Part shown: piece by piece, positions 9,801 to 12,800 of the stretch
Layout of the letters: each line of letters opens with the position of its first letter
How positions within the stretch are numbered: the stretch's first letter is position 1
NCBI GenBank assembly: GCA_002269645.1
Contig: NIVC01000650.1
Coordinates: forward strand, 340,996-404,995
DNA from: Macrostomum lignano
Lineage: Eukaryota
Length of the DNA: 64,000 nucleotides
Direction of reading: 5' to 3'
Program-made: the position numbers and the translations under genes
Notes under the pieces: model-generated
What the model was told of the DNA's origin: nothing
The model's input: only the letters and a program-made list of their open reading frames with translations
The model's database searches: none

Positions 9801-12800
9801 CCCAGGTTCAAGTGCTCAGTTCTTGGTCCTCTTGAGACTCTCCTTGGAAACTCGAACACTTGCACTACTGTCCGATGTCAGTTGTACTTAGTTTGCTTGT
9901 TTTTGCAGTCCTAACAAATTCCTAGATCTTTTGGTTCTCATCTCAGCCTGTCTCTGCTCCCTGCATTGTGTCTCAGTCTGTATCTCTGATGTCTGCCTTG
10001 TGTCTCAGGCTGTGTCTCTGATGTCTGCCTTGTGTCTCAGGCTGTGTCTCTGATGTCTGCCTTGTGTCTCAGCCTGTGTCTTTGATCTCTGCCTTGTGTC
10101 TCAGGCTGTGTCTTTGATCTCTGCCTTGTGTCTCAGCCTGTGTCTCTGATGTATGCCTTGTGTCTCAGCCTGTGTCTCTGATGTCTGCCTTGTGTCTCAG
10201 CCTCTGCCTCTGATCTCTGCCTTGTGTCTCAGCCTGTGTCTCTGATGTCTGCCTTGTGTCTCAGCCTGTGACTTTGATCTCTGCCTTGTGTCTCAGGCTG
10301 TGTCTCTGATCTCTGCCTTGTGTCTCAGCCTGTGTCTCTGATGTCTGCCTTGTGTCTCAGCCTGTGTCTCTGATCTCTGCCTTGTGTCTCAGGCTGTGTC
10401 TCTGATGTCTGTTTTGTGTCTCAGGCTGTGTCTCTGATCTCTGCACTGTGTCTCAGCCTGTGTCTCTGATCTCTGCCTTGTGTCTCAGCCTGTGTCTCTG
10501 ATCTCTGCCTTGTGTCTCAGGCTGTGTCTCTGATCTCTGCCTTGTGTCTCAGGCTGTGTCTCTGATCTCTGCCTTGTGTCTCAGCCTGTGTCTCTGATCT
10601 CTGCCTTGTGTCTCAGCCTGTGTTTCTGATCTTTGGCTTGTGTCCCAGCCTGTGTCTCTGATCTCTGCTCTTAATCTCATCCGCACAGCTCCATATCTGA
10701 GTATGTACTTTTACCATAAAGTTTTGATAATGAATTATTACATTATTTTATGATTGCGGCCACTAGAATATTATGGAGTGGGAGCGAATGTGCATGTTTC
10801 TGTTTTTTTATAGCCACTACATCACACGCGGTAATCCAGTCTCTCTTTATCCCATAACCGACTTCCCAATGTTATAAAGTGCTTGTGCTTTGCTAGCACT
10901 CAGAAGCAGTGGACTTCCTTTGTCTGCTGTGAGACCACACGTTCGGTACTTCTGTACACTTAATCGAGGGGGTGGGTGTGTTACATGTAAAGAGGGCGGT
11001 AGAGAAGTCTGAAGAGGGAGACACAAAGAGACACAGTCTGAGCCTGAGACACAAGTCAGAGATCAGAGACACAATTCAGAGATCAGAGACACAAGGCAGA
11101 GATCAGAGACACAATTCAGAGATCAGAGACACAATTCAGAGATCAGAGACACAATTCAGAGATCAGAGACACAATTCAGAGATCAGAGACACAAGGCAGA
11201 GATCAGAGACACAATTCAGAGATCAGAGACACAATTCAGAGATCAGAGACACAATTCAGAGATCAGAGACACAATTCAGAGATCAGAGACACAATTCAGA
11301 GATCAGAGACACAATTCAGGGATCAGAGACACAATTCAGAGATCAGAGACACAAGGCAGACATCAGAGACACAATTCAGAGATCAGAGACACAATTCACA
11401 GATCAGAGACACAATTCAGAGATCAGAGACACAAGGCAGACATCAGAGACACAATTCAGAGATCAGAGACACAAGGCAGAGATCAGAGACACAATTCAGA
11501 GATCAGAGACACAAGGCAGAGATCAGAGACACAAGGCAGACATCAGAGACACAATTCAGACATCAGAGACACAAAGCAGAGATCAGAGACACAGCCACTA
11601 CTGAGCACGGGACACGAGCTCTACCTTAATATCAGGGTGTGGATAATGTACTTATGGCACTTGTTTGGATGCCAAGAAACTACGTCGTAAAATGAAGTAC
11701 TTCTTGCATATTTGCTCTGGACAAAAGCGAGCGCTTATTAAGATACAAAAGCCAGTACGCTTGCAGACTTGCTACCGATTGCACTTGATAAAATATTTAA
11801 AGTAGTTTGAGACATTGAGACTCGGTGTGGTGGCGTTTGAGAGCTTAGAGACGATTTCTGGTGCGTTCGAGACCTACTTGTACGGGTATTGGCACTGGCT
11901 GCAGGAGCAGTCAGGAGTTTCAGTAGGGGGGCAGAGGATGTCTTGAAGGAAGCGCCGGAGCTGCTGGTCAGGAGACGCCATGTTCTTTAGTCAGCCAATG
12001 GGGATCACGGACCCCATTGACCTCTTGGCTACGGCCCCGCTAGGCGCTACTGTGATAATGAAAAGCTTTGCACATAACACAAAAACTAGTCAGTAGGGTC
12101 AAACTGCTTTTGTCAGGAGTGTCAGGCCTCTTGTCAGGTCTGTGGATGGCTCAGCCGCTAGCGAGGCAGTCCCGAGCACGAGAGCAGCTGGTAGAAGCTG
12201 CTGCAGTACTTGTACCGATCCCAGAATCCTCTCTTCATCCCGCGCCACTTCTTCACAGCAAGCTGGTGGACTTCGGGGACTGACTGGCCGTCTCTCGGGC
12301 TGCCGTGGCCGACTTTGGGCTGAAAACTTTGAGGCTGAGGCTGCTGACGAAGCTGCGTGTGCTTGCATGCATGGGCAGTGCTAATCTTGTGGGATGTCTC
12401 ACTCACCTGAGCCACCTGGCCGTCAGGCGGAGCGACTCGGAGAGAGCGACGGTCGTCAGACACAGAAGGAGCAAACGGAGAGGCGTGTTGAGCATGGTGA
12501 GATGCGGCTTGAGCTGCAGGCAGGCAGGTAGGAAGCTGGGTTGAGGTTGGAGAACCGATGAGGCACCCGTAAGCCGATTGGTTCGATGGACAGGAGCTGC
12601 GAAAAGGTGCCGCATTTTATAGACTTTTGGCTCAGAAGCTCAATTGAGCAGATGCTTGATAGGCAAAATTATTCAATTACGAGTATTAGCCTTCGATTTC
12701 ATCTAACGAAATGCTGCAATTACACCCACTGCAGAGCAGGTGTGATTTGGGGAATCGATGCTACCTATTAAAGACCGAGCGTGTCCGCAATTATGGAGGT

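Follow-up and report, generated by a model that had tools for sequence, protein, structure and literature searches.

A candidate minus-strand gene for a small secreted protein with a C-terminal Cys-loop tail in Macrostomum lignano

Introduction

Among described precursors, Pro-MCH combines a signal peptide, a spacer, a dibasic site and a bioactive peptide at the extreme C-terminus, with eight residues between the ring Cys, and the precursors of somatostatin, urotensin II and allatostatin-C have a C-terminal disulfide-looped peptide after basic cleavage sites, with rings of 4, 6 or 10 residues. A urotensin II-like peptide is known in a mollusc (PMC3493602), and in planarians the npp, spp and npy sets of prohormones have come from genome and peptidome mining (Collins et al. 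2010, PMC2953531). Here we describe a locus of comparable layout in the flatworm Macrostomum lignano, a candidate minus-strand gene at 12158-12621 of the last 64 kb of contig NIVC01000650.1 (assembly Mlig_3_7, GCA_002269645.1). This whole 64-kb stretch is referred to as the window, and contig coordinates are obtained by adding 340,995 to the window coordinates used throughout.

The conceptual product of the locus shares with Pro-MCH the order of its parts and a C-x8-C pair, the latter being a resemblance of spacing only, and differs from it in having neither sequence similarity nor a profile match. We take its ring residues to be unrelated to those of Pro-MCH and its tail beyond the ring to differ, the aromatic FW..YKY motif of the candidate lying N-terminal to the ring. 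With somatostatin, urotensin II and allatostatin-C it has in common aromatic and basic residues (F-W, K-Y) near the first Cys, but its ring is of eight residues, and the FWK(T/Y) pharmacophore that lies inside the ring of those peptides is outside it here, the F-W standing six residues ahead of the first Cys; Pfam gave no profile match to these families. Judged by sequence, the absence of Pfam and PDB matches excludes membership in the MCH, somatostatin or urotensin families. An earlier note on this DNA, written from the letters without database searches, had compared the Cys spacing with that of vertebrate MCH and disclaimed homology; no Pfam family matches at E≤10. Like the planarian prohormones the candidate would be a short, lineage-restricted precursor with a signal peptide and dibasic sites, of a kind often missed by standard annotation, but for the planarian precursors there is validation from mass spectrometry and in situ hybridisation, whereas the candidate is a prediction from sequence.

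Our tentative reading, held with somewhat less than even confidence, is that the locus may be an unannotated, lineage-restricted minus-strand gene for a small secreted protein. If so, it would provide a regeneration model, the peptides of which are poorly catalogued, with an orphan secreted and possibly neuroendocrine peptide, one that resembles a C-terminal Cys-loop prohormone in its working and yet falls outside every known family, and it would exemplify the small and neuronal genes that deposited annotation misses. If the gene is not real, the locus serves as a calibration case, in which open frames and signal-like leaders prove cheap in GC-rich flatworm DNA and compositional phase or RNA evidence alone separates candidates from noise.

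Results and Discussion

Structure of the candidate gene

All of the elements named in the earlier note are present on the minus strand, at the positions given there. A TATAAAA sequence at 12615-12621, the candidate TATA box, lies about 120 nt upstream of an ATG at 12495, which is in the context CACCATG (12499-12493) with A at -3 and comes before any other ATG in a transcript begun at the start site that the TATA box predicts. With 28 TATAAAA sequences per 128,000 strand-nt, one lying 60-200 nt upstream of an ATG is expected by chance at ~3% of sites. Upstream of the TATA box the GC content is 36-39%; it rises to 55-62% across 12600-12100 and dips past the stop. The GC-rich block of 12100-12600 extends from the TATA box to the stop, and the rise and the dip suit a transcription unit or exon.

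The putative coding part of exon 1 (12407-12495) comprises the ATG and a 29-codon signal-peptide-like leader. Residues 8-18 form an 11-residue core with a mean Kyte-Doolittle hydropathy of 2.72, the n-region has one basic residue, and a heuristic check finds a plausible cleavage site with A-L-S at -3 to -1. The in-frame stop of the leader, a TGA, sits inside a consensus donor, CAG/GTGAGT, with its GT at 12406. Removal of the 26-nt GT..AG segment GTGAGTGAGACATCCCACAAGATTAG (12406-12381) joins the leader to a frame that ends at a TAG (12160-12158), and the 103-aa conceptual product that had been described is obtained. It has dibasic sites KK (12253-12248) and KR (12235-12230), both ahead of a 23-residue tail, in which the Cys codons at 12205-12203 and 12178-12176 give the C-x8-C spacing. 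The prohormone layout of signal-like leader, dibasic sites and two-Cys C-terminal tail is thus present in the conceptual product; as an observation the earlier note is confirmed, and its interpretation is partly supported by the analyses below.

The 5' end could also be formed in another way. A pyrimidine-rich acceptor-like site, TACCTGCCTGCCTGCAG/C (CCTGCCTGCAG/C; minus strand, 12513-12530, cut at 12514/12513), matches the M. lignano spliced leader (SL) trans-splice acceptor motif, [T/C]TNCAG (PMC8629364), and we infer that the terminal ATG of the SL would be in frame with the candidate leader at 12513.

Two further features are found on either side of the candidate. About 265 nt upstream of its TATA box, at 12883-12890, is a cAMP-response-element octamer, TGACGTCA, a perfect palindrome; the octamer gives eight matches over both strands, read as four sites in the window, and its position near the candidate may be chance. 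A second small open reading frame (ORF) with four Cys lies at 11874-11981 on the minus strand, 180 nt downstream of the candidate stop. It falls within a GC-rich block (11820-12060), with a coding-like GC content at third codon positions (GC3) of 0.71, a contrast between third and second positions (GC3-GC2) of 0.26 and a codon score of +0.11 bits per codon.

Coding-type composition and layout exceed chance

To score codon usage we used a table of ~1,665 codons from the cyclin H, G protein-coupled receptor (GPCR), nicotinic receptor, IF3-like, claudin-like and Usp genes of the window, which were chosen by homology or annotation support. By this measure the claimed frame is the best of six over the leader, over exon 2 and over the joined coding sequence (CDS), the leader scoring 0.09 bits per codon with GC contents of 0.57, 0.50 and 0.83 at its first, second and third codon positions. 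More informative is the GC content by codon position: the leader has a GC3-GC2 contrast of 0.33, exon 2 one of 0.23 and the joined CDS one of 0.26, compared with 0.06-0.42 for real CDS in the window. Among 120 background open frames of 60-200 codons, taken outside repeats and known genes, the contrast has a mean of 0.001, a standard deviation of 0.078 and a maximum of 0.20, such that the joined CDS stands above all of them; the background frame with the maximum is probably a real receptor exon. Codon-position periodicity is absent from the flanks of the candidate, and its phase shifts from leader to tail as the frame change requires.

The most coding-like segment is formed by the last 31 codons (12161-12253, minus strand), which encode KKWRGMKR and the peptide. 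They score 5.8 bits, a value equalled by 3-5% of stop-free background windows (95-97th percentile), their GC3 is 0.81-0.86, and 12 of the 13 two-fold codons in the tail end in G or C, compared with 66% in real CDS. The plus-strand frame that shares the third-position phase of the tail is closed by stops over it, and the signal therefore belongs to the minus-strand peptide frame. The GC3 periodicity is a genuine signal that both claimed frames are coding, strongest over the proposed peptide, and it is independent of the features on which the earlier note had relied.

A scan for the layout as a whole required a signal-like leader, an optional GTRAG..AG intron of 20-150 nt and a product of 80-200 aa with a dibasic site followed by 10-35 residues containing two Cys 4-12 apart. 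On both strands of the real window the candidate locus is the sole match, and only 1% of 200 simulated windows have at least one. The rules were set after the candidate had been seen and the 1% is therefore optimistic, but it also leaves out the TATA box, the consensus donor and the A at -3 as further coincidences. Two results thus exceed chance, the composite layout and the GC3 enrichment in both frames.

The intron and the choice of acceptor

Flatworms, M. lignano among them, have microintrons, which tend to have precise splice sites and no pyrimidine tract and to be found near the 5' ends of genes (PMC6530080); G. salaris has a mode of ~32 nt (PMC4040987), O. felineus one of ~37 nt (PMC6530080). 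The proposed intron (12381-12406) is like these in being the first of its gene and in having a near-perfect donor, CAG/GTGAGT, GT..AG ends and no pyrimidine tract, but at 26 nt it is shorter than these modes reported for other flatworms; the earlier note had cautioned that 26 nt is very short for a metazoan intron. Its acceptor, GATTAG/C, is of the TAG type with a pyrimidine fraction of 0.45. Of the proposal as first made, the GT..AG segment and the consensus donor stand, whereas the acceptor is poor and the codons exclusive to this model score as non-coding. None of the verified introns in the window is a microintron: those of Usp (497 nt), the IF3-like gene (926 nt) and the claudin-like gene (791 nt) span 497-926 nt and all have the form GT[GA]AG...CAG. 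The 26-nt splice is the weakest element of the model, and that exactly this intron is correct is very unlikely. If validated, it would extend the lower bound of flatworm microintrons and rank among the shortest metazoan spliceosomal introns.

Alternative acceptors are found within 12300-12380. When all downstream AGs are enumerated, the peptide tail with its KK..KR sites stays complete and in phase after introns of 26, 80, 107 and 113 nt; the 80-nt intron ends in AAG (first base of exon 2 at 12327) and the 107-nt intron in CAG (first base at 12300). The whole-CDS codon scores are best for these two (10.3 bits for 80 nt and 9.1 bits for 107 nt, versus 5.8 bits for 26 nt). Acceptors at 176, 206 and 209 nt also reach CSGLPR, but with the dibasic sites lost or the peptide truncated. 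An 87-nt intron ending TTTTCAG/C (first base of exon 2 at 12320) puts the peptide out of phase and gives a 51-aa Ser-rich product, and the acceptors at 45-72 nt and 87 nt together yield Ser-rich products of 51-65 aa that stop at 12253 and are without the peptide.

Weighing of alternative explanations

Several results weigh against a peptide-coding gene, and most of them are equally what would be expected if the locus were a chance constellation, which we regard as a real possibility. The GC-rich, CAG/CTG-rich core between inverted minisatellites (see below) would then be non-coding, with no protein made, lying perhaps in an intron or between genes or forming the loop of a foldback-like repeat, and the stop-poor frames, the ATG with Leu-rich codons after it and the GTGAGT would have aligned by coincidence. 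An open frame of 152 codons is obtained in 14% of first-order Markov simulations of a 541-nt block (12100-12640, 58% GC), so that openness alone is not evidence; the five overlapping open frames of at least 70 codons compare with 3.1 expected. Signal-like leaders occur by chance 5-9 times per window, and over the leader region a plus-strand antisense frame (12284-12541) reaches a score similar to that of the leader itself, so that composition does not by itself decide between the two there. In the middle of the putative CDS, the 20 codons specific to the 26-nt model (12379-12320) give -4.5 bits, as non-coding DNA does, and the joined CDS scores 0.056 bits per codon compared with 0.005-0.32 in real genes (leave-one-out). 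No AATAAA or ATTAAA is present in the 567 nt downstream of the candidate stop, although 2 of 7 control genes also lack a poly(A) signal within 700 nt and its absence is thus uninformative as a discriminator; the GC content past the stop stays at 54%, versus 27-46% in control genes. Even a rate of 1% per window would leave ~100 random matches to the layout in a 764-Mb genome. Chance does not readily account for a GC3-GC2 contrast that exceeds 120 of 120 background open frames and lies in the range of real CDS, nor for a periodicity phase that shifts between leader and tail as the frame change predicts, and it must accommodate the TATA box, the CAG/GTGAGT donor and the A at -3 as coincidences beyond the 1% estimate.

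The searches for relatives belong on the same side of the balance. The spliced 103-aa product finds nothing at E≤10 among 5.8 billion proteins, Pfam and PDB give no match to the candidate at E≤10, none of the M. lignano proteins from UniProt and GenBank in the database contains the sequence, and the six-frame translation of the window contains no paralogue. Three matches of a 101-aa ORF among 1.84 billion representatives are to long repetitive proteins, aligned only to the Q/P/S-rich spacer, and were rejected as low-complexity artefacts. The peptide string was found in none of 8.3 million searchable full texts. A control search with cyclin H recovered only the window's own protein and relatives at 34-42% identity, which shows the database to be without M. 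lignano RNA-seq assemblies and other Macrostomum species; with the genus nearly absent, the negative results say little about conservation within Macrostomum. The lack of an annotated gene is likewise weak counter-evidence, because the NCBI calls or products also miss the nicotinic-type receptor, the GPCR ORF and the claudin-like gene.

It is conceivable, though unlikely, that the minus strand is indeed transcribed but yields another product: an 87-nt intron, or another with a length divisible by three, would yield a 51-65-aa Ser-rich secreted protein and place the tail in the 3' untranslated region, an unspliced RNA would encode only the 30-aa leader ORF, or the RNA could be a non-coding antisense transcript. 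The best acceptor context of all is that of the 87-nt intron (CAG, pyrimidine fraction 0.65), whose product lacks the peptide; CAG is the dominant M. lignano acceptor motif (PMC8629364), and all three verified introns of the window end in it. Over 12319-12254 the Ser-rich frame and the peptide frame are about equal (0.054 versus 0.091 bits per codon). However, a Ser-rich product leaves the strongest coding-like signal (12253-12161) unexplained, and the whole-model codon scores are 3-6 bits, compared with 9-10 bits for the 80- and 107-nt peptide-frame models. More improbable still is that the gene is one continuous ORF with no intron, interrupted in the assembly by a 1-nt indel, or that it is a secreted-peptide pseudogene with a recent frameshift. 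With the peptide frame open from 12616, any +1/-2 shift within 12495-12405 would join leader and tail, as had been foreseen in the remark that a 1-nt error gives a similar join; coding-like periodicity on both sides of the break is expected under this explanation, and the assembly is of PacBio reads with Canu (PMC5730564). It was also polished with Pilon using Illumina DNA and RNA-seq reads, however, the stop falls exactly within a consensus donor, and no intact paralogue is present among the M. lignano proteins in the database. A 1-nt assembly error is therefore possible but not favoured.

Under our preferred reading of a small secreted protein, the TATA box would direct transcription from about 12590, ~30 nt further downstream, or the 5' end would be formed by SL trans-splicing at 12514/12513. 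Translation from the ATG at 12495 would give a cleavable signal peptide, and the donor at 12406 would be spliced to a nearby acceptor, an intron of 26, 80, 107 or 113 nt producing a 74-103-aa precursor with the tail in phase. Convertase cleavage and carboxypeptidase trimming would then release a disulfide-looped peptide from the C-terminal 23 residues. From transcription and splice choice through secretion, processing and disulfide formation to a signalling role, each of these steps is inferred. In-phase translation of the Cys-loop tail, whatever the route, seems somewhat unlikely to us, and the fullest version, a new disulfide-looped signalling peptide with a 26-nt microintron, antisense within a 6.6-kb claudin-like intron and carried by a foldback-like minisatellite structure, would be highly improbable.

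Minisatellite bracket and possible host gene

The candidate lies in a 1.6-kb core (11594-13195) that is unique within the window and is bracketed by two arrays of a 20-nt minisatellite, GAGACACAATTCAGAGATCA, at 11046-11593 on the plus strand and, in inverted orientation, at 13196-14029. The left and right arrays provide inverted arms of up to 192 nt that are 95% complementary, and long inverted arms of short tandem repeats around a unique loop amount to an architecture like that of foldback transposons; no target-site duplication is obvious at the outer ends of the arrays. A related array of the GAGACACAATTCAGAGATCA type is present at 9941-10668.

On the plus strand a claudin-like gene, with exons at 15634/15708-15785 and 16577-16939, is a possible host. 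This gene is real: 15708-15785 and 16577-16936 are matched by UniRef A0A1I8IZV9 with 100% identity, and a weak match to PMP22/Claudin was also obtained. An upstream ORF at 8343-9072 with a TM1-like (first transmembrane) segment can be joined to it in frame, from the donor CAG/GTGAGT at 9073 to TCCTTCAG at 15634, which would place the candidate inside a 6.6-kb intron of the claudin-like gene. No database protein contains the upstream exon, and exon B of the claudin-like gene could equally be SL trans-spliced. The 'nested antisense' placement of the candidate is thus plausible. SL-like acceptors occur at both 15612-15785 (exon B) and 12513, in each case with the ATG of the SL in frame with the downstream ORF.

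We also considered the block as a plus-strand coding exon of the host gene. A good acceptor near 12259 and a donor at 12497 are available on the plus strand, but this was rejected as no plus frame is open across 12259-12497. Of the AG sites read in a manual check of 12284-12400, none puts the frame 12284-12541 in phase with the exon-A donor.

Neighbouring genes, annotation and other features of the window

The window contains 47 minisatellite array entries by Tandem Repeats Finder, as is typical of the M. lignano genome, and the introns of its genes are of several hundred nt and filled with such arrays. NCBI gene calls in the inspected part of the window are Pex16, Usp, cyclin H and the IF3-like gene. 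The cyclin H frame (36014-38403, plus strand) is open upstream through a 1.4-kb array of a 20-nt minisatellite, and the deposited cyclin H CDS is 5'-partial and begins six codons ahead of the Met.

A nicotinic-type ligand-gated channel gene (nicotinic acetylcholine receptor, nAChR) is present on the minus strand at 44972-48238 and ~49000-50110, with clear Pfam matches to the ligand-binding domain and transmembrane region and with minisatellite-filled introns; the NCBI calls at the inspected locus include no gene over its exons. An intronless rhodopsin-family GPCR of 376 aa (7tm_1, Srw-like) is encoded on the minus strand at 18743-19873, at a distance of 6 kb from the candidate. The contig collection has no record of the exact GPCR product, and an NCBI-sourced product was found neither for this ORF nor for the claudin-like gene.

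A 2.2-kb direct repeat of 99.7% identity, at 50803-53022 and 61745-63960, most likely represents the long terminal repeats (LTRs) of a young LTR retrotransposon of ~13 kb. Between the LTRs are minus-strand ORFs of 449 aa (54082-55431), which has no Pfam match, 171 aa (57429-57944) and 481 aa (57932-59377), the last two of which we read as putative protease- and gag-like ORFs, respectively. The right LTR (61745-63960) terminates close to the end of the contig.

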